Shown in pieces: positions 15,001 to 36,743 of a DNA stretch of 64,000 nt (positions are counted from its first letter, which is position 1; every line of letters begins with the position of its first letter). The DNA is from Klebsormidium nitens (lineage: Eukaryota > Plantae > Klebsormidiophyceae): contig DF236950.1 of assembly GCA_000708835.1 (NCBI GenBank), positions 101,355 to 165,354 of the forward strand. The letters are read 5' to 3'. The notes under the pieces were generated by a model, which was not told the DNA's origin, made no database searches, and was given only the letters and a program-made list of their open reading frames with translations. The position numbers and the translations under genes are program-made.

Positions 15001-16883
15001 TTGATTCGCGGCTCTGGTCTGGTCCTAGATCTCAGAGATTGCGAAGCCCCCACAATGGACCGGAGTGGTGGGATTCCCGGTGCCGTGGTGATTCCTGCTT
15101 GTTTTCTTGTGCAAGGAACATTTATTCCAAAAGATCCGGTAAGATGATAGAGATCAGCTGTGAGCACCGCTGTTGCTTTTCTGAATCTCTATCACATCTA
15201 TTTATCAGCTAAGGGACAGTCTCTTGCAAGCGCTGTCGCTTTTATCAGGCACAGCGGAAGATCCTTGCCCTAGAGCCTCCTTCCTGACGCCCGCGTAACG
15301 CTTCCACAGGGCTGAAGCGCGGCTGAAGAAGTCGAATGCGGACGACAAGACGAGCGCGAGCGAGAGCCAGGCGCTGTCCGCCATGGTGCGCGTGCTGGGC
15401 CTGGAGCGGGGCGGGAACGAGTCGGGCGTCGTCGCGATCGAGAAGGCGCTCCAGGCGGCCGCCTCGGAGCGCGAGGCGATGAAGAAGGAGCTGGAGCAGA
15501 AGCGGGAGGAGGTGGACGTCATGGCGCGCCGGCTCCGCGACATCTCGCACAAGAACGCCAAGGTAAGAGTCCTGGAGAAACAGAACGGCGGCATGATGGT
15601 GGTGTCCAGATCCCTCCCGGAAGCCATTTTCTGTCCGTCTCCGGCTCCGACTTCGCATCCATTTGAAAAGTACGAGGACTAAGAGGTGGTTTCGCACAAA
15701 GCGCTCGCTGTTCCAGCTTTGCCGGAAAGTGACGTCCAAGATCCGGGGCTTTCCGCAGCCAGTCCTGATGTAGGGCGTGGTGATCACAGCGCAGTGCAGA
15801 TCTTGAATGCACATTGTTTCTCAAAGTGAACACGGAGAGTTTGTTTGCTGTCCGTCTTGTTTGGGTGAAAGTCCCACCCTTGTGTTGTAGGATGCAAGCA
15901 GTAGGAGGCGCCCTTTTTAAAGGATTCATCGCAACAAGCTTTTAACTCCGTCCTCCTCACGCCGCAACTCATTTCATGACCACTCAGTCGTCGTTTGCTG
16001 GTGCATTATGCGTTCGGTCTTTCTTAGTCGAGGGCGAATTATCATCTCAAAGACAGCTCGAGGTAGTTCTCAAGAATCCGGCGTTGCTGCCCCGTTTTCG
16101 CTTTCGTTTGAACGTTGTTACTTGCTCTTATCTGGGTGCCTCACGCTACTGTTGTTGCTCCCCGTGCAGATGGAGGAGCTTCACCAGGCCTCGGCTGAGG
16201 CGGCTGGCGAGGCGGCGGGCCTCCAGATGCAGCTCATCACGAGCCAGTCCATGCTGCAACAACTGCAGCGCCGCAACCGCAGCCTGCTCATGGACGCAGC
16301 GGCTGCGCAGGCCGTCCTCGAACTTCTCCGCGGCCCTTATGTGAGTCCCCTCATCGGGCGGATGTTGTCGGGAGTGTCCCTAATCTCGCAGCCAGTTCAG
16401 TGTCTTTGGCGGTCTCTCCTACTCTGCCTCTGCGACGCCTGCTCTGTGTGCAAGCTTGTGTCCGCGACAAAGAGCTGTAAGGCTTGGTTGCCAGTACATC
16501 ATAAGCTGATGTGGAATTTTGTAAGGTTGCGTACTCAAGACGGGTTTTGCTGACCCTCGAGAGTGTGTGTTTGGGAAGCCCAAAAGAAGCGGTTCATCTT
16601 GGCCTGTTCCCCTGCTTTGAGAACGGCTTGGAGTAAGCCAACGGGAAGCAGACTCTTCTTACACGTTCTTTGCTGACTTACGGACAGCAGGTTTTCTTTT
16701 GCGTGCGTGCAAAAGCTATTATGTCTTGAATATACTGAGACTCGTCGGAAATATCGTTTCATTCAAAGAGAGCAGTTAGCATGTGTTCCTGATGTTACCC
16801 TGTGAATGCAGATAAGAGACGTGGGCCAGCTGCAGCTTCTGCTCGAGCGAGCAATAGAGCTCAGCATTAGTGAACAGCGATGA
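9019..16883 (+). CDS. Large coiled-coil protein of unknown function (10 exons, possibly more upstream)
   Basis: Phase-consistent exons 9019-9783, 10155-10324, 11465-11870, 12334-12522, 12980-13243, 13693-13884, 14458-14963, 15310-15562, 16170-16340, 16812-16883. The product is E/K/L/Q/A-rich with heptad character (e.g. ELEKKLAEVTAENTALQ). An acceptor-like TGCAG at 8991-8995 suggests the true start may be upstream (about 7887). Confidence 0.7.
10236..10313 (+). repeat. 39-bp in-frame tandem duplication inside exon 2 of the coiled-coil gene
   Basis: cctgatgcaacccaggctttgccaccgaggaccccgatg is followed by cctgatgcagctcaggctttgccaccaatgaccccgaga, encoding PDATQALPPRTPM / PDAAQALPPMTPR. Confidence 0.9.
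12104..12145. repeat. Perfect 21-bp intronic tandem duplication
   Basis: caatctaagtaggttggaaaa x2. Confidence 0.9.
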
Positions 16884-17927
16884 GCCGCTTACTCTTGAAG
16901 AGGGCGTCATCCACGCAACTGGTAGTGACTAGCAGATGGACGTTTAGTGTGAAAATGGCGGGACACGCAAGGGAGTGTAATGTTTGGGACTTGATCGACT
17001 GCTTCGATCTGTTAAAGCGAGCTGCTTCCAATACCAACCATGCTTTGTACCAAAGGGCACATCTGTTTGTGAATAGTGGTGGCTGCATCTTTGATGGCTC
17101 TATATCTTGACATACAGTAATCCTTAAGGCAGTGCTGGGAATGGCAGGCTGATCTAGGCATGAGGAGTAAGTAACTGCGTATTTCTATCTACATTTTGTG
17201 GCATAGGCACCGGGTTTCTAAATTTAAAGACCAGGTCTTTCAACCTCAGGACAGGTAAACCTTCTGCAGTTGTACACTTGTGGTGCAATCGTGCATGGTG
17301 CAGAGCTTCTAGATTTACCGAGCTGGTATACATAAGGGTTCCAGACATTTGATGACTCGCCAGAGCTTACAACAATGCTGGTGTGAAAGGGATTACGTCG
17401 CTGCGTATATCTAGTACTTGTCGCACCCGGCTAGGCTTGTGACAGGAGTCAGTACATTTATAGGAAAGAGTGTGAGTGCAAGCTAAGTGAACAATTACCT
17501 GGTTTTATTTTCGAGGCATTGTGGCATCGCATGATTCAATCTTGGATCGTCATTTGAGCGTAATATATTCACGGAGTCAGTGTCACTGTTCTTTCAATTG
17601 AATGCTATTGATGCGCTGTGGTGCAGCAGAACATGATCTATCCCCAAAGGCCGGCCGCTGATTGTTAAGCTGCACTGAGCGGTATGCATCATCGATATTA
17701 AGTTGTGATGACCTAAGTTCCGGGCCGCGCCCGTCGCATCATGTACGTAGGCCCAACCGTCTTCCATATCCTCAGTAGTACGGTAGGCTTTATCTATATA
17801 GGCTCTTACCGTGTACACTAATCCATTAGACCGTGACGGTTGCATGAGCTAGAATATGTAAGTGCATTCAATTATATATATAGACAATAGCTTTCTAGCG
17901 AGTCTGTGATTCGTGTAAAGACTATAA

Positions 17928-18398
17928 GGGTACCGTCACTTTGAAGTGGCACCCCCTTAATTAGGTATTCTGTTGGGGGGGGCTTGGTTCGGATCAGCCA
18001 AGCAAAGGTGGGGAGCTCCCCACCTTTGCTCCCCCCCGGCTAGCAGGGGGGGAGGCTTGAGCCTGAGGCCTTTTGCTTGGGGCAAAGCTCCAACCAGGTT
18101 TCAAGTGAGAAGCATGCTTTTTCATGCAGATTCCCCCTCATTTTGAATTCAATGTTCAGACTGTCCAGCACACGAACAAGACAGAAATATGTCCTTTTCA
18201 GCACCAAAATGGGGCTGAATTCATGTATATGATTGTGTTTTTTAACCATAGTTTTGCCCGGTTAGCATGGTCCACCGGACTGGGACCTTGACCTTGCCAA
18301 TGACGACAAGGCCGGGAGGGGGGGGGGGCTTGAGACCCTTACGCCAAAGTGCCTCCAAAATACCTGTAACCGGGTGCCACTACAAAGTGACGGTACCC
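17928..18398. mobile_element. Tourist-like (PIF/Harbinger) MITE, 471 bp
   Basis: 27-bp TIR GGGTACCGTCACTTTG(A/T)AGTGGCACCC at 17928-17954 and 18372-18398 (1 mismatch), flanked by TAA at 17925-17927 and 18399-18401. No coding capacity. Confidence 0.88.
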
Positions 18399-19192
18399 TA
18401 ATTGCATGAGACTAAGTTACTCTATATATACAGATGACTGAGTCACATATGCATGCGCCGCCTAAAAATTGTATATCCATACAAGGCAGCGCACGTACCT
18501 ATATACAGACATGACTTCAAGTTGTCGAGCCTGTCGCGATATACAAGCTAGGGCCTCACACATTCAAAGCTTTAGTAGTATACCAAATACATGTGGCATG
18601 CAGATATGGCACACATGTCAGTGAAGTAGTATGATCATGTTGCTGACGATCCAACATGGTTTATGATCCGACTCCCGCCTAATTAAGTAACCATGTGCTA
18701 ACGTTTCAGCAGTTTCAAATCAGTGTGGTAGCCACTGGACTGGGTTCACATGTTGCAATCTGGTCCGTCGAAATTATCCACGGGCCACGGAATGAATGCA
18801 GATTAATTGCTTGAGCGATAACTGAGTACTGTGTAGCCGGCCCAGCTTACGAGCGGTGGGAGTTCTAAGCTCATGGTTTATATAGGATGTATAACAGAGA
18901 CGGACTTTGACTTGCTAATTGAATGGCTAGTGTATGGTTTTGCAAGATCCTAAAAGTTAACGGCCACATGTCCAAATAAGTGATGAATGGTTTTGCTAAT
19001 ATGCACAGTTGTATAATTAAGGCTCACTGTCCTACAGCTTTTCAGAGTTATGATACATTTGACATTCACTCAAGTCAATCAATGGGAGTAAGGCAAGAAT
19101 CATATGTACACCGCTAGTGATAGTCCTTATCAGAGTTGCTTCCACGTCCCTGACCTAAGATCTTGTTAAAGATACACATGAGCCGTGTGGTA

Positions 19193-26726: not shown

Positions 26727-27613
26727 NNNNNNNNNNNNNNNNNNNNNNNNNNNNNNNNNNNNNNNNNNNNNNNNNNNNNNNNNNNNNNNNNNNNNNNNNN
26801 NNNNNNNNNNNNNNNNNNNNNNNNNNNNNNNNNNNNNNNNNNNNNNNNNNNNNNNNNNNNNNNNNNNNNNNNNNNNNNNNNNNNNNNNNNNNNNNNNNNN
26901 NNNNNNNNNNNNNNNNNNNNNNNNNNNNNNNNNNNNNNNNNNNNNNNNNNNNNNNNNNNNNNNNNNNNNNNNNNNNNNNNNNNNNNNNNNNNNNNNNNNN
27001 NNNNNNNNNNNNNNNNNNNNNNNNNNNNNNNNNNNNNNNNNNNNNNNNNNNNNNNNNNNNNNNNNNNNNNNNNNNNNNNNNNNNNNNNNNNNNNNNNNNN
27101 NNNNNNNNNNNNNNNNNNNNNNNNNNNNNNNNNNNNNNNNNNNNNNNNNNNNNNNNNNNNNNNNNNNNNNNNNNNNNNNNNNNNNNNNNNNNNNNNNNNN
27201 NNNNNNNNNNNNNNNNNNNNNNNNNNNNNNNNNNNNNNNNNNNNNNNNNNNNNNNNNNNNNNNNNNNNNNNNNNNNNNNNNNNNNNNNNNNNNNNNNNNN
27301 NNNNNNNNNNNNNNNNNNNNNNNNNNNNNNNNNNNNNNNNNNNNNNNNNNNNNNNNNNNNNNNNNNNNNNNNNNNNNNNNNNNNNNNNNNNNNNNNNNNN
27401 NNNNNNNNNNNNNNNNNNNNNNNNNNNNNNNNNNNNNNNNNNNNNNNNNNNNNNNNNNNNNNNNNNNNNNNNNNNNNNNNNNNNNNNNNNNNNNNNNNNN
27501 NNNNNNNNNNNNNNNNNNNNNNNNNNNNNNNNNNNNNNNNNNNNNNNNNNNNNNNNNNNNNNNNNNNNNNNNNNNNNNNNNNNNNNNNNNNNNNNNNNNN
27601 NNNNNNNNNNNNN
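26727..27613. other. Assembly gap (887 N)
   Basis: Run of N in the sequence. Confidence 1.
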
Positions 27614-27848: not shown

Positions 27849-30800
27849 CTACCTTAAGGCCTCGATCTCTTTCGCGAGCAACGAGCCCCGCGACTCGAGA
27901 TCGCCTGGCTGGCCCCGCCTCCGCAGGCTCTCCTGCAGACTTAACTGCCGCAATTCGTTGCCGCCTAGCATGTGATCCATAACCTGCTGGAACCGGTCGC
28001 TCGGTTCCACTTCGACGGCCTTGCCGCGGAACCCGAGCCGCAAGTCGCGCAACTCGTTCCCGCCACTCTCGGCAAGCTCGGTCTCAACGTAGTACGCATC
28101 GAAGACGAAGCCAATAAATACGTTCATGATGAAAATGGTCCTGCAAGGAAAGGCCGCTCAAGACGTCAAGGTGCAGGACTCAGAAATGTAGGCGCTTGTC
28201 GGGCGGAGGTTACACCATGCATGGCGATGGTTTCATCGATGCTGCGATTTGAGCTGAGATGGAAGTGAGCCTGCGAGAGGAGCAAGGAAAGGATGTCAAA
28301 AGAAACGTGAGCCAGAATTGCCAGGCTGCTGCGGGTGGAGGTGCAACCGAGCGAGCTGCCTCTGCCTTAAATCAATGAAGAGACTTGCAACCAGGTGGGC
28401 GGTTAATGGTGCGGACGACGGTGCACGGAGTAATACGGAAGGAACTAGAAGGGGGCCGGAGCTCACCCGAGGATCAGGAAGCTGATGAAGTAGACGCGGA
28501 TCCAGGCGGTGTCGTAGATGCGCCCCGCGATGGTGAGCCACACAGAGAACAGGCTGCTGTTGAGCCACTGCACACACGTGGGCAGGCTGCTGGTTGGGTT
28601 GGGCAACCGTCACGACAGTACACGGAGAGTGTTCGCAGCAAACCCCTACCGTTTCAATCTTACTCTACTTCTCGCAAGAAGAGAGGGTAGAATAAAACAG
28701 AAAACGGTACGAAGCGAGCGTACTCCAGCGAACTGCATCACAAGCTGCCACAGCCGTCTATGTGAGATGTCGTTCACGAAGACTTTCATTTGAGCGCAAA
28801 GGCCATTGCAAAAGGGTCTTGCGCTCTCTCTCACCTCAAAGATAAGCACCATCCCCGATGCGTAATCATTGAAATTGTTGGGGCCGTAGCCGGAGTCCTC
28901 ATAACCGGTGCCTGCGGAGTATGGCAGATTGTCTCAAGGATGCGCGAACGAACACAGCGACTTTGGCCACCGACATGCCCCTTACACGCGAGCGCATTAA
29001 GGTCTGAACCGGGACAAGAAAAGCGACTTCAGGCCTTCTTTTTAGGCCTCGAACCTTAAGTACACGCAAAGCACCCTCGAGAAGAATACTTCATTATGGA
29101 CGGTCTGGCAGAGAGTATTCTTATGACTTTCATGAGCAAGTGCCTCTCAGGCAGCATATTTGTTTCCAGAACCAGTCGACGACCCGTTCTTCATCGTACT
29201 TTCCCGGAGTCTAAAGCGGGCACACGTCCGAGCATTCTCCAAAATCTCAGCAAATCTTGAGCGGGGGACTGAATCTGCTGGCAGCCAGCAGCGACCAACT
29301 CGAGGATTCCGAACTGGAGAAAGGCGGTCCACTATGCCGTTTCCGACTAGGGAGGTATTGGCTCAACTTGCTCTAACAGTCAACCCGGCGTTGACTTGCG
29401 AGTCTTTTGATCCCAAACATGACCCATTCCACTTTCAGTGACAAAGCCTCGATCTCGGCATCCTCGAGCACGCGAAAGAGCTCGCCAACCGACCGCAAAT
29501 TTTACTGTTCTGGTGTTCCCGGCTCGAATTCTCTAAGGCCTTTTCGATCCCAAAGTATTAAGTCTGAGAGGGGATTGCGGCCGACCTTTGATGCAGGGCG
29601 CGCCGTCGTAGACCTCCCCCCCGAAGAGCTGGATGCCCATGCTGCAGAAGATTGAGCTGAAGCAGTACGTGACGCCCACCAGCGGCGTCACCACGCGCCA
29701 GAGGCTGAAGAACGACGTCATGATGACGGAGTAGCGCTTCACGGACGTCAGCACGCGCGCGAGGCGCAGGACGCACAGGATCAGCAGGTAGCGGATCCAC
29801 TCCGGCTGAACCAGGCCCGCCACGATCAGCACCTGGGAAGGGGGCGGGGTGTGTGTGGAAAGAGCAGGGAACAACCACACTATTGTCAGTTCCTGCTGGA
29901 GAAAGAGGGAACAACTACACCGGAACCGCGATGCGCAATTAGATTGATACAATTCGCGGGGGGAAGGCAGTTTGAAAAACTCTTCTGGTGCTAGAATGGG
30001 CAAAGGGCAAAGGGCAAAGGGCTGTCTGGCCTCCTGCGAGAAGGAGATGGACGAAGGGGTGGCTGAAGGGCCCTCCAAGGCACGCGGACCGAAAGTGCAT
30101 AACAGCTCCGGGTCGTGACAGCAGTCGTGACAGCTTGGAAGCAACAGCACAGCAGCTGCGCCCATTTGGGCTGAGAAAATAGCAGCCAACGCAGAGGAGG
30201 ACACTTCCAAGATGAGTAGACCTATGCTCTTTGCTGCGATCTGTGCATCGCGCCAGACGGGCTTGAAGAGATTCACGCAGCCTCTTCAACACCACCAATC
30301 GAATCTTGAATCGACGCTGTACGCAAGCAGAATTTTAAAACCATCAGTAGAGACAAGTAGTCATGCAACGCCTAGATTGCGCGGCTGGCTGGGCGCTACC
30401 TGCGTGACGACGATTCCGAGCGTGACGAGGCAGTCAAATTTGTTGGCGGCGGTGCGCCAGTAGTGGCGCGCGCCCTCGGCCATAATCTTTGCCAGCATCT
30501 CGGCGAGGTACAACAGCCCGAAGCCCATCTCGATGCGCAGCCATTGCGCCTGCAGCCTGCGGGGAAGACGGAACTGTTCCTTTGGGTGGATTCAGCAAAG
30601 CTCTTACTTTGGCATGTATTTCCAAGCTTTGCTATGGTGAGAAGAGGAGGCCTTTGTCCTCCCTTTCGGCGTCGCAGAGTGCGAAGAATGAATTCTTGCT
30701 CATGGACAGTTCCAAGAGTCTGATTTCGTTGGTATAGGAAAGGCCTTGCTTTCATTGATTTGCTTGATAACAAAGGACGTGACTTTAGCTGGGCGAAAAG

Positions 30801-33800
30801 CACGTACCCGTGAAGATCTCGGAAAGGCCCCCAAGTGATCCCCACAGACATGGTCTCGCCTGCTGTCACACAACGGACGCAACTTTTTACAGCGGGGCCA
30901 CACTGCATGAGATCTGAAACGAGCGCACTGCTTCCAGAAGGGCGCAGTTGACGTCACCTCTGGTCGCCCGTGACGTCAGCCGCGGACTCGATCATGATGA
31001 CGAGCGCCTGCAGGACGAGGACCGCGTGCACGATGTGCTGGAAGGCGCGGCTGCGGACGAAGTCCTTGAATGCGTCGTAGCGCGCGGAGGTGAAAACGTC
31101 TGCGAGAGAAAGAACAAGGTGAGACGCGCTGGAAGGCGATAACTGGTGTGAAACTTGGTTGCACACTTGCGCCAAATTTCACGTAAATCTTGATTCTGGG
31201 GAGTAATTCAAGAGCCCAGAAGGGGATCGAGACGGACTAGCGACAGCGGTTGGAGGGGTTACTCAGCTGTTGAGTGGATCACTTGCAAGCAGAAAACTCG
31301 CAGGAGCAAGTCGCGGAAGCAGAAGGTGGGCGAAAGGAACACCCATTAGCAGGTTTGCGTGCAGCAGGTGCTTTCGGGGCCGAACGAGCGGACGGATGGG
31401 TGTGTCATTGCGGCGCGGGGTAGCCAGTGGTCGACGCACGAGGATTCAGAACCGCTTTACACAGTTTTTAGAAAACAGATTTCTACGTTAGGCTGCTACG
31501 GTTCTCTTGGCTATCCTTAGCCAGAAACACAAAAGAAGCCAGGTCATACGAAGACGGGTTCCCGAAGCATGATTAAGCAAGAGGGTTAGCGAGGTGGAAG
31601 TATCATTAAGGAAGGCAACTCCCCAACCAAGTCAAGCACCCGCAACGGCGGTCCGGGAGCCGACAGTGGGTAAAGGAGGCGGTTAGGGGAAGCGAACCCA
31701 CCCGGAAAGAAGACTTCTAGTAAAGTGGGCTCGTCCAGCGGTACGAACCGGAGCCGCACCGCGACGCACATGTCCAGAAACTCTTCCTCGGTGATGCGGT
31801 TGTCACCCGAGTCGTCCAGCGCCAGAAAGATGTGCTCGATGTCCGCCTCGTCGAAGTGCGGGAAGTTGCGGTACTGGTTCAGGGCTATCAACAGCTTGCT
31901 AATCTGGCGGGAAAAGGGTCGAGGGGATGGGCTGGCAGATACGCGGCAGAAAAGATTGGTCGCTTCGGCGGACGAGGACCCTGCTCTCGCGCTTCACGTT
32001 CAATGGGTATGGAAGACTTGAAGTAGCGTTTGAAGCAGAAGGCTTCATCCAAGGTTTTAACATTTTCTTCTCCTGGCTTCTGCTTTGCAAATTCGCGAAG
32101 TCTCGACGGCGTCCCTTGAGCGAACCCTGAGAGAGAAGGGGATCCAGATGGTTTGGAGTTAAGTCCGAACCCCTGACATACAAGCGGATTCAGCGAACCA
32201 GAGTTGCGTCACGGGGGTAACACTCAAGTCATGAAACCTTGGAAACGCCGACATTATTCTCGAATTGAAAAGCGGCTCATGCGTTGAGTTCAAAACTCAA
32301 CCCTCTGGGGTGCTTTTCGACAGTCGGCGCTTGCTTTTCCCAACATCCTCGTCGATAAATCACTATGAAGGTCCTTCAATGCTTCATCAAGTCAAATAAT
32401 AAAAGCGCGCACAAAGCATCAGAAGTCATAGAAAAATACCTTGAATGAACTCGTGATCCTATCAAGCGAATGATGACCGACAGTATTCCAGAAAAGAAGG
32501 AAACGACGATCGTAGGTACAACCAAAGAAACTAGACCTAAAAGCATCGGGGAATTGACTATTCCAGTCGGTGCAAGCCCGGTACGGACTTGATGGCTGTC
32601 GAGGTAGCCCCGCTTGCGCTCGTCGAGCGTTTGGAAGGCCGCCTGCAGAATCTTGTTCCGCGCCAGGTACGCCTTCTTGTACTCCTTGGCCAGGCTGTTC
32701 TTGTACCCGTCGTACACCTGCGCGCGCGGGAGTGACGTCAGCGGACCCCCGCCCGGTGACCCGGCAGCCAGACCTTTGCATGTCACGACATTCGGTCGGT
32801 TTGAACAGGCAAGCCGGTGGCACAATTGCGAGCCGTGTTTGGTTTGTTGATTGGCAGGAAGGGAACTTGGGGAAGGACGTAGACCTTGCTAGGACCCTGG
32901 ATTTAGAGCCCGGATAGGAGGACAGGCGAGCTTAATCTCGACAAATCACGGCGCAGTCCTCGGTCGCACAGCGTGCAGACACGGGAGGTGATGAAAGTGC
33001 CCCACTCCTTACCACGGCGAATATCAGACTGAGGAAGAAGTTGCACGACACGAACTCGAACGCTGCAACGCAGAGAACGGTATGAGGCACTTTCGAGAAG
33101 AGCTCAAGGTTTCAATACTTCCATGAAGCCGCAGATGTGTGCTTTCCCGGGCTATAGGAACGACGCGTTTCCGCTGTGCGGCCTCACTTTTCCGGCCGTT
33201 TTGAAGTCGCTACAGGCAACCCGCTACAAGCCCTCACACAATTTCTAAGCATAGCAGGCTCGGCGTGGCTACGAAGCTAGCGCATTGGGAGAGTTCAGAC
33301 CCTGTTGCCGTCTGGATTAGCCAAACGAGACTTGACTTTGCATGCGGTCTGACTGTCCGAGACGCGCTTAGCGAACTGACGGCAAAGGAAGTGCATGTAC
33401 GAAAGCTTGGATTTCCTGGCACATCAAAGGAACACGGGCTTTCGAATTTACTCATGAAGATGAGCCCCGCGGCGCGATTGTCGTTGAAGGCGGGCATCCA
33501 GAAGTCGGGCAGGTTTTGCGCCGTGAACATGCCGATGATCAGCTCGTTCAACGTGGCGCGCCAGGACTTGAAGTACTTCTCGCCCTGCAGGGACCCATCA
33601 GCAGAGCCCTTGACAGTCAACGCCTCCAAATCGAAAGATAAGGTCAAAGTTCGTTCCATGTCGCGGATTGTCAGATCGTCCGTGTTAGATTGCGCGTCGA
33701 CCGAAAACCTACTTGGCTTCCAGTCTTGCCTTTGTCGTACCGACAGGTAGGGGATACGGTGCTTTTCAAGCCGTATTACTTCTAGGGTATGTACCTTAGA

Positions 33801-36743
33801 CTACCACGTGGATCTGAAAAGCCATCCGATTGGCTAAGAAATCTGGAAAGCCTTTTGCAACTTTTCGGTCGACGCCACCCTTACGTCGATTCGTAACCTG
33901 CTTTCATGCATTCACCCGACCGCTTTTCGATATCAGGGAATTCCTAGGAGAAGAGCACGGTGTGGACGGAAGCTTGCTCTTTTCATACACCGTTTATAAG
34001 GCCGAACTCCCCATACCATGCAAACTCTGTACCGGTTATAGGCTCCGGGGACTTTACTTGCGTGGTGTGCTCGAATAGGATGTAGAGCAGCCACGCCGAG
34101 AAGGCCAGCCAAAAGCCTATCAGCGTCATCATGTCCAGGAACGCCTGTGCCGGATGTCAGGACACGTGTCAGCCCGTGATCGAAATTCCTTCCTGAATCT
34201 ACATCCGGATCCTACCAGGGTTGAATCCATGAGGCATAAAAAGCTGCGAATGAGTCTTGAGGGGGAGGGGATCCGACATTAGACCATGTCTTCGCCCGCG
34301 CTGTTGAGATAAACATTCGAGTAGGAGAGGGCGTTTCGAAAGGAAGAACCTGGCAAGTGAAGTGGAGAGATAGGCAAAACAATTTGCGAACACCTATCAG
34401 CTAGGCTGAATCATCATATTACTCCCTGCTTCTCTATAGTCAACGTACTTCTGGAAGTATATCAAAAGCAATGGCGTTATTGGGGAGACCGCCTACCGGG
34501 ATGATTCCTATCAGAATGCGAAAGGCCTTTCGAGTCTCGCCGCCATTGGCCCCCACCACGAGAACCCTGACACGACGTCATAACGACAGAACTGTCAGCG
34601 ATTCTGAAACAAATCAGCAGCATTGCGAGAGAACCTCGGAGATGCCTTCCAACAACGTTTGCAGCACAAGTTCCAGAATATTTTCCCAGCGCCCTGCTTC
34701 TGATATTACTACCTGAGTCCGCGGGGATTGTCTTTTAACAGATTTGGCGAACATTGCAAGAGCGCAAGAATCCTGAAAGAGACCGTGTACCATACCTGAG
34801 GTACGGTGCCAGCCGGACAGCCACCAGCTTGTCGAGTATCCGGACGTCCGTGTAGAGCCATGCCGTGTTGACCAGGACGTCCGCAGCGAGCAGGGAGAAG
34901 AGCAGGATGAACAACTGGTTCAGGCGGTCCCGCCAAAAGTGACGGTGGCCCTCAAAAGATATGGGCAAGAAAACCTGCAAAATGGAAAAATGATAAGACG
35001 GCAGTTCAGGCGGCAAAAGAAGTCAACAGCCGCAGGGTGTCGCAGATCCTTTGTCAAAGGACCCCGTTTGAAGTCGATCGTCATTACTCAGTGGTTGTCA
35101 AAAGAAGGAAACGGACTGTTTGCAATAAATCTGACTGACATGACAAAGGCGATGTAGCCAATGCACGAAGCCAGTGGTGTCGGAAAGCAGTCAAAGTCAA
35201 TACATACAGCCTTGGCCGTTGGAATACCTCCAGCAACACTCTATCTTGGCTCCACAATCAGGACAAGGACAGCCTTCGAATGAAAAAGTTGAAACCATCA
35301 CTTGGAACAAAGACTCGTCCTGGCTGATGCTCAACTGTCAGGAGCACCTAGTCAAGAAACCCCGCTTCCGAGGATCAAATCGAGTTTGAACTACTGGATC
35401 CTCATGATCCCAACATCAGTAAATGGACGTATGAGTAGGGGCCAAGTCTCACTTGGAATGCCAGGACGCACAGCGAGACCAGCTCGAGCGCATTGAACGA
35501 CTTTGGCGGCAGGTATGGGAACCCCCCGAGCCAGTACTTTTTCGGGTCTCCGCAAGGGTGCGGAAACGGCTCCGCACACCAGCTTGGCACCTCCACGAAA
35601 TTGAGCCCTAGCAAGAGACAGAAGTTGGCGGTCCAGATGGGCGCGAGCGCGCCGCACCAGAAGTAGCGCTTTGCAGATCGGGAAAAGTGTGTGCTGTCGA
35701 GGAGCTCGATTGGAAGCCCGATGCCGTCCTCCGCTAGATCAACAAGGGCCGCAGCGCGCTCGACGCGGTCGGCAGAAGACAGCCCGCTCTTGCGCCGGCC
35801 TTTGGAAGCCTGGAAAAAGGCGATTGGCTTTCAGAAGTTGTTTGGTCTTGAAGAGGAAGCATCGCAGGACCTGAACCGTTCTATTGCTCTTTTGCGAGCA
35901 GATCTCAAAAGTCGTGAAAGTGAACGTGGATTTTCATCTCACAGTGTCCTGCTCTCCCCAAGCAATGGAGCCTTCAACTTCATATTTGCAGTGGGCATTG
36001 TGAGAAGGGCGAAAGGAATCAGTAGCTGTGAGGGTGGGTGGAAATCTAAGCATTTGAAGTATCTCTGCTTGGAACTACCGGGGCTACTTCACGATCTTGA
36101 AGAACGGTCTTCTTCTTCTTCACAAGCTGTTCAAACCTGATGTAGCAAGTTGAAAATAGTTGACACCCTTTCCAGACTAATTGCAGAAGGAACCGCTGTG
36201 GAGTCGGTTGTTAAGCAATCAGGAAGAAGCGGGGGGTCAGCTTCATGAGTATCCCAATAAACTGCTCAAAGGATTGCTAGGATGGAGGGGACCTTTCCAG
36301 TCAGTCCAGTGATGTTGCAGAATATTCGGGCCAACTTGGAAGTGCACAACTAGGTCCGCAGCTCAACACACAACAGTCCAAGTCGTGGATATGAAGCGTC
36401 CGGTCGCGTGTTTGAGCTGGAGGCTTCCTGATGCATGCAATTGGCTGCACAACCCATCAACGATCACGAGTAAGAAAGGCCTTCTTCTCAGTTCATTAAA
36501 TGACAAGCGTTGGCGCACCGTGATATAACTTTCTACCAGCTGGCGGCACGAACCTGTGCACCACCTCCACACAAGAACAACAGGACGAAGGATTCTCACC
36601 TGGGCGCGGCCAGCTGCATTGCGCATGCGAAACCCTCTCTTCTGTCCGTGACGAGCTGGTGCAGTGGGCCCTGCAGCAGAGATGCCTTCCGAGCTGGATG
36701 CAGGACGGGCATCTCCTAGGAGAGGCTCCTCAGACAATGCCAT
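27849..36743 (-). CDS. TPC1: Two-pore cation channel (TPC1 family), divergent pore type (15 exons)
   Basis: Exons 36743-36600, 35809-35453, 34974-34796, 34566-34497, 34144-34058, 33584-33451, 33062-33013, 32717-32589, 31903-31702, 31099-30958, 30556-30400, 29832-29586, 28911-28835, 28567-28467, 28140-27849. Plant TPC1 hallmarks: AAALVDLAEDGIGLP, RLAPYLR, EF-hand DDSGDNRITEEEF, EWIRYLL, GIQLFGG, NFNDY and MNVFIGFVFDAY. Confidence 0.93.

Follow-up and report, generated by a model that had tools for sequence, protein, structure and literature searches.

Can a two-pore channel (TPC) have both of its selectivity filters rewritten and still be kept as a working channel? The question is raised by a gene of the alga Klebsormidium nitens, encoded on the minus strand of a 64,000-nucleotide stretch of contig DF236950.1 (assembly GCA_000708835.1, positions 101,355 to 165,354) that we refer to throughout as the window. 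An earlier note, made from the letters of the window, had described this gene as specifying a functional channel with altered selectivity rather than a decaying copy. The reading that we favour, and regard as reasonably probable, is that it encodes an expressed, intact plant-type TPC; that it belongs to a lineage of two gene types, A (the window gene) and B, which is sister to TPC1 of the slow vacuolar (SV) type; and that its pore was remodelled and then kept, with changed permeation as the likely outcome.

The gene model comprises 15 exons (Table 1) that encode 797 amino acids in one intact frame with a single terminal stop. Taken exon by exon in tblastn searches, these exons are collinear with full-length TPCs from helix IS1 onwards (helices are named here by domain and number), running from an N-terminal AALVDLAEDG to a C-terminal DHMLGG. 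The polypeptide contains two tandem Shaker-like six-helix domains, the arrangement by which the TPC family is defined. Pfam Ion_trans matches the IIS2-3 and IIS4-5 exons, an EF-hand model is also matched, and for both the filter I exon and the IIS4-S5 exon chains of Arabidopsis TPC1 (AtTPC1; PDB 5E1J, 5DQQ) are the best matches among solved structures in the PDB. With land-plant TPC1 the window protein shares not only the two six-helix domains and the two EF-hands of the linker but also an FE-x-T-x-QG motif at the end of IS5, the NFNDY motif of pore helix II and a C-terminal DHMLGG-like motif. The GC content at third codon positions (GC3) is 0.82, and that of the introns is 0.51.

Evidence for transcription comes from RNA contigs of four public runs, from four studies, that were mapped to positions 28100-34000. 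Nine GT..AG introns between 28141 and 33451 are exactly spanned by spliced contigs from the four studies. Because these nine joints skip exactly the predicted introns, all reading CT..AC on the plus strand, we conclude that the four runs are RNA and that the gene is transcribed and spliced. The junction 28835/28567, next to filter II, is a canonical GT..AG intron (28568-28834) seen in all four runs, at contig depths of 138, 128, 85 and 19, while a loose contig end at 33588 runs into the S5 exon and fits a canonical CAA/GGC junction. When the filter regions of five TPC types were used to search the window for another exon that could restore a canonical, VMGNW-like filter, none was found.

Where land-plant TPC1 has TTSNN in filter I and VMGNW in filter II, the window protein has TAQNL (in the context F-TAQNL-PD) and NSSLF (in the context IFE/WL-NSSLF-SVW, the slash marking the splice junction). 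The earlier note had given these residues and their positions exactly, including the replacement of Trp by Phe in filter II, and two further statements that it made about the pore also hold: that pore helix I carries a one-residue insertion, and that filter II aligns without gaps. The extra residue is placed alike by HMMER, with which the filter I exon matches AtTPC1 residues 247-285 (chains 5dqq, 5e1j and others) at E = 1.6e-3 with one gap, and by a MAFFT alignment of 26 TPCs, in which filter II is gap-free and the insertion is confined to the window protein and two relatives of the B-type. The other 23 sequences of that alignment are land-plant TPC1a, bryophyte TPC1b including MpTPC2, animal TPC2 and two protist-like sequences, and none of the 23 carries the motifs of the window protein, T-A-Q-N-L-P and S-S-L-F. 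Wherever they are covered, filter I reads T-T-[SA]-N-[NF]-P, the exceptions being P0005 and Riccia P0073 (TAANDA), and filter II reads [VMQ]-[GN]-[NKD]-W, the one exception being P0005. The latter sequence (L005-L007, Logan transcriptomes SRR8128902-4) is a plant-type TPC of full length that falls on the TPC1a side of the tree and has non-canonical filters of its own, LLQSQNSPDE and LVTEGNATW, but these are unrelated to those of the window gene and it is without the pore-helix insertion.

In human TPC2 the pore is lined at filter I by the backbone carbonyls of Thr271-Ala272 and at filter II by the side chains of Val652-Asn653-Asn654, of which Asn653 forms the constriction that sets sodium selectivity (PMC6424560). 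The plant equivalent of Asn653 is a glycine (Gly630), and the plant channel is therefore non-selective (PMC6424560); in AtTPC1, M629 and G630 abolish sodium selectivity. At AtTPC1 positions 629-631 the window protein has Ser-Ser-Leu and the B-type Gly-Thr-Leu, with Trp632 replaced by Phe in the window protein. The earlier note had the constriction asparagine changed to leucine. The leucine does replace an asparagine, since it sits at the position of human Asn654 and Arabidopsis Asn631, but the constriction asparagine itself, Asn653, aligns with plant Gly630, which is serine here. Across the A and B types the central residue of filter II has a hydroxyl side chain (Ser or Thr), and the neighbouring Trp is Phe or Tyr. 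At position 631 all other aligned TPCs of clear register have a polar residue (N, D or K), and a noisy, machine-read figure of PMC8508871 also shows S there. In repeat I, position 267, which repeat alignment suggests to be the counterpart of 631, is likewise changed, to Leu in the window protein or to Val. We considered the conserved N-x-S/T of filter II as a glycosylation site and dropped the idea, a glycan inside the filter being sterically implausible.

Away from the filters, the window protein agrees with land-plant TPC1 at the equivalents of R540, R543, E528 and D454 and departs from it at those of R537, D240 and E637. In IIS4, E528, R540 and R543 are kept, and at R537 both types, A and B, have Cys. 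Two EF-hands lie between the domains, as in SV-type TPC1, and the second has a canonical loop predicted to bind calcium (Pfam EF-hand_7, E = 3.8e-5, below the gathering score). In AtTPC1 the luminal site at which calcium inhibits is made up of D240, D454 and E528 (PMC8892357), and D269 and E637 coordinate calcium at the luminal entrance of the pore (PMC8508871). The equivalents of D454, E528 and D269 are kept, while D240 has become His, in the A-type alone, and E637 has become Thr; at the latter position Thr or Ser is found across both types. The IS6 asparagine that nearly all other TPCs shown possess (it is His in MpTPC2) is Ser. Gating is likely retained, because two of the three domain II S4 arginines, the equivalents of E528 and D454, and a canonical EF-hand 2 are all kept.

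Relatives were sought with the 82-residue IIS4-S5 exon as query, and the 60 matches supplied both the full-length TPCs used for the trees and the fragments that led to L001-L004 (Table 1). The B-type, which includes K. nitens kfl00097_0180 besides the two complete genes L002 and L003, has the filter pattern of the window gene and the same extra residue in pore helix I; it also shares the Ser of IS6 and the Cys of IIS4, and its IIS6 begins identically. It differs in the exact residues of its filters (TG[SA]N[VL] and NGTLY; FTGANVPQ or FTGSNVPD, and WLNGTLY, in L002 and L003) and in keeping the D240 equivalent. A K. nitens B-type transcript fragment reading FTGS-NLPD, with 33 identical bases shared with the window, occurs in two RNA runs, and A-type and B-type transcripts are present in the same runs. 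The intron that separates pore helix II from filter II stands, in the B-type, five codons upstream of the A-type position (L002 10815-11125; L003 8960-9370) and VLIFQWLNGTLY is encoded within one exon, so that the reading of the filter is independent of the A-type splice site. The B-type is also without the intron that splits IS4 from IS5, and its IIS4-S5, EF-hand 2 and last exons are interrupted by additional introns. In L002 the B-type gene is closely followed on its downstream side, at 15301-18818, by a retroelement of the Ty3/gypsy type with capsid, protease and reverse transcriptase.

Both types appear to be under purifying selection. L001 offers 96 codons, 82 of IIS4-S5 and 14 of pore helix II; over 95 of these the window gene and L001 differ by dS 0.38 and dN 0.053, giving a dN/dS ratio (omega) of 0.14. 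Between L003 and L002 omega is 0.137 over all exon cores (652 codons) and 0.18 over the three pore exons. Common to A and B are the patterns T-[AG]-x-N-[LV]-P in filter I and N-x-[ST]-L-[FY] in filter II; judged from the genes compared, this remodelled pattern arose before the two types separated, and selection has maintained it from then on. Further searches added nothing to the lineage: a word search with P0005, and one with a (poor) alignment of P0005 and 13 window exons, gave no K. nitens protein or new close relative among the matches listed, and the pattern matches returned by metagenome scans with the filter II exon and with IIS4 alignments included none that tblastn confirmed.

Maximum-likelihood trees place this lineage beside the SV-type channels. 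In the first (26 rows, rooted on animal TPC2), A and B form a clade with 100/100 support and a long stem, of about 1.0 change per site, which joins TPC1a and P0005 at 99/99; in the second, from which the long-branch rows P0005, P0024, P0047, P0067 and P0076 were left out, A+B is sister to TPC1a at 95/96. The B-type rows are concatenated in-frame exon cores, and hence lack a few residues at exon ends. The window gene is sister to the land-plant TPC1a clade, not inside it, and a separate clade of MpTPC2 and the Physcomitrium TPC1b genes excludes it (100/100 and 99/98). The A/B lineage, which is sister to TPC1 of the SV type in land plants and stands outside TPC1b, is seen in Klebsormidium-like algae and nowhere else. 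The sodium-selective, PI(3,5)P2 (phosphatidylinositol 3,5-bisphosphate)-gated TPC2 and TPC1 of animals, to which the window protein is about 21% identical, share the two-domain fold. They have V-N-N in filter II, whose side chains set their selectivity (PMC6424560), and no functional EF-hand calcium gating.

How such a channel would work can be sketched. Most likely it is still a dimer, opened by depolarisation and cytosolic calcium. Its permeation path would have been remodelled before the A/B split, in both filters and by the extra helix residue, leaving a filter II constriction lined by hydroxyls and followed by a hydrophobic residue where TPCs of clear register are polar. With Thr in place of E637 and His in place of D240, two luminal calcium ligands would be lost, and luminal calcium binding should be weaker than in the SV channel. 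The expected product is a cation channel whose selectivity or conductance is unlike that of the SV channel, and on these grounds the window channel probably passes ions differently from the other TPCs compared.

Several observations weigh against this reading. No current has been recorded from any Klebsormidium TPC, which makes altered selectivity something that we infer from sequence, and if the two Leu side chains stand opposite one another in the pore, like the pair of Asn631 residues in wild-type AtTPC1, they could form a hydrophobic barrier. The searches for relatives gave no A-type gene covering the filter exons, the three other K. nitens TPC paralogues (kfl00312_0080, kfl00110_0290 and kfl00012_0290) are absent from both trees, and the support of the topology tests (below) against an affinity with TPC1b is only marginal. 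As to the gene model, exons 1-5 and the putative 64-nucleotide intron at 34732-34795 lie beyond the interval to which RNA contigs were mapped, and are placed by homology and GT-AG sites. This intron is atypically short (the others are of 267-790 nucleotides), and splicing it in frame adds Q-S-P-R-T-Q before IS4. Homology with the B-type points instead to an acceptor at 34713 (exon start 34712), which is out of frame by one base, and if it were used the frame would therefore break; the mismatch near 34712-34796 may reflect either a fault in the assembly or the genuine use of an alternative acceptor. Finally, intron 8 is kept in roughly half of the transcript contigs. An unspliced 745-nucleotide contig (31874-32618) has depths of 72, 54, 29 and 16 in the four runs, as against 76, 54, 60 and 18 for the spliced junction, whereas for the other introns the unspliced depth is no more than about 3-10% of the spliced. 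Transcripts that keep intron 8 would encode domain I only: read-through is predicted to add about 70 hydrophobic residues before it meets a stop, so that the product would consist of domain I and EF-hand 1. An Rfam scan of the gene, intron 8 included, gave no match.

The most serious alternative is that the protein does not conduct at all but is a modulatory subunit, its pore closed by the Leu pair and the IS6 Ser, and serves as a voltage and calcium sensor or as the heterodimer partner of one of the other four K. nitens TPCs. TPCs are dimers, there are five paralogues in K. nitens, and A-type and B-type transcripts are found together in the same runs. A dead pore would, however, be expected to drift, yet the pore exons are under purifying selection and the filter pattern is kept in paralogues that are only about 60% identical; we consider this explanation unlikely, although it is the one that we would take most seriously after our own.

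A second alternative, which the earlier note had put forward, is that the gene belongs to the second TPC type of bryophytes (type 2, or TPC1b). According to published work, type 2 TPCs predate the colonisation of land by plants. Like the window gene, TPC1b genes encode TPC1-like channels of streptophytes that are distinct from the SV channel. When A+B is constrained to group with TPC1b, 14.6 log-likelihood units are lost on the first tree and 7.4 on the second, with p = 0.056 and 0.038 in the approximately unbiased (AU) test, so that the first tree does not formally reject the placement. Both trees nevertheless join the gene to SV-type TPC1, with the MpTPC2 clade apart, and identity is 36-37% to TPC1a against 25-26% to TPC1b. 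The filters of TPC1b (MpTPC2, MpTPC3, Physcomitrium TPC1b) read TTANNP and [VI]-N-[NK]-W, and the published figure sets the Klebsormidium genes apart from them. TPC1b is without a known current and its EF-hands are described as degenerate, with extra basic residues (PMC9783492), a trait absent from the canonical EF-hand 2 loop of the window protein. Membership of TPC1b is accordingly improbable, and this part of the earlier proposal is not upheld.

The weakest alternative, that the gene is a decaying pseudogene or that an incorrect splice model has produced its odd filter, can point to the short intron, the out-of-frame acceptor and the retention of intron 8, but is scarcely credible when the filter II junction is read directly in RNA from four studies, the B-type has the same motif inside a single exon, the frame is intact, codon bias is strong, omega is near 0.14 (up to 0.18 in pore exons) and no alternative canonical exon was found in the window. 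The intact frame, the correct splicing of the RNA, the codon bias, the low omega and the motifs shared with paralogues of about 60% identity lend indirect support to the earlier judgement that this is a functional gene.

Table 1. Features of the TPC gene in the window, and relatives retrieved by the IIS4-S5 search
Feature	Position in window, or source	Strand	Basis or remark
TPC coding gene, K. nitens kfl00001_0210	27849..36743	minus	exon-by-exon tblastn to TPC proteins
Exons 1-5, high to low	36743-36600, 35809-35453, 34974-34796, 34731-34635, 34144-34058	minus	homology and GT-AG sites
Exons 6-10, high to low	33584-33452, 33062-33013, 32717-32589, 31903-31702, 31099-30958	minus	homology and spliced RNA contigs
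Exons 11-15, high to low	30556-30400, 29832-29586, 28911-28835, 28567-28467, 28140-27849	minus	homology and spliced RNA contigs
Putative 64-nucleotide intron before the IS4 exon	34732..34795	minus	sole in-frame GT-AG solution
End of IS5, F-E-H	34067..34075	minus	D240 equivalent, His here, Asp in B-type
Exon with pore helix I (one-residue insertion) and filter I	33452..33584	minus	match to AtTPC1, RNA
Filter I codons T-A-Q-N-L, residues 309-313	33510..33524	minus	canonical T-T-[SA]-N-N
IS6 segment L-S-L-I-F-A-V	33013..33033	minus	alignment
Intron 8, between the two EF-hand exons	31904..32588	minus	RNA contigs, spliced and unspliced
EF-hand 2 loop D-D-S-G-D-N-R-I-T-E-E-E	31781..31816	minus	canonical calcium-binding pattern
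IIS4 voltage-sensor helix	29755..29802	minus	PDB alignment, AtTPC1 numbering and multiple alignment
Exon with pore helix II, NFNDYASGMVLIFE stretch	28835..28911	minus	tblastn, RNA
Exon with filter II and first part of IIS6	28467..28567	minus	RNA junction in four runs
Filter II codons N-S-S-L-F, residues 670-674	28547..28561	minus	canonical V-[MV]-[GN]-N-W
L001, A-type relative	Logan SRR23617210		87% identical over 82 residues
L002, complete B-type gene	85-kb JGI metagenome contig		about 60% identical to window protein
L003, complete B-type gene	Logan SRR23617307		about 60% identical to window protein
L004	1-kb contig		same relatives search

Two structural details of the locus may be recorded beside the table. 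An assembly gap of 887 N (26727-27613) lies about 240 bases downstream of the TPC stop codon. Of the six copies of the TGACGTCA palindrome in the window, three lie inside the TPC gene, at 30949, 30971 and 32733, one of them spanning the donor of intron 10.

The gene is already catalogued, because the kfl00001_0210 row of supplementary Figure S2 of PMC8508871 (machine-read, and noisy) matches the window residues after filter II; the kfl00097_0180 row matches the B-type. In that figure, which draws on data from Dreyer et al. 2021, five genes are given as 'Klebsormidium TPC1' and are set apart from TPC1b. No remarks on the filters of the K. nitens TPC genes were found in the literature searched, which excluded Dreyer et al. 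2021. What the catalogued gene encodes is a pore variant of a known channel family that is real, expressed and conserved. In the same noisy figure all five K. nitens TPC1-like genes appear deviant at Gly630-Asn631, where they read A-D, A-S, T-L, S-L and S-S, so that a non-canonical filter II may be common to all TPCs of this alga.

A bolder version of our favoured reading, that of an intact SV-related channel with a remodelled and retained pore, would take the Klebsormidium A and B types to be a natural TPC lineage with a new kind of permeation, in which a hydroxyl-lined constriction and a Leu/aromatic cap replace the Asn/Trp of the other aligned TPCs, and in which regulated retention of intron 8 gives rise to a half-channel. 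We put this forward tentatively, as a possibility that we are at present inclined to doubt. Were it true, the selectivity could be new to the TPC family, for example a strict monovalent or potassium preference without luminal calcium binding, or gating at the filter, and regulated retention of intron 8 could yield a one-domain half-channel.

The selectivity of TPCs is a live question, in which non-selective plant channels are set against sodium-selective animal channels and the difference has been attributed to two or three filter II residues. The channel of the window gene, which is natural, conserved and expressed, has had those residues and their counterparts in filter I replaced while the gating apparatus is largely kept, and it is therefore well suited to testing which parts of the filters conduction and calcium binding depend on. 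And since no K. nitens TPC1-like gene is apparently canonical in filter II, the function of TPCs in early streptophytes may have been more varied than a single SV channel would suggest.

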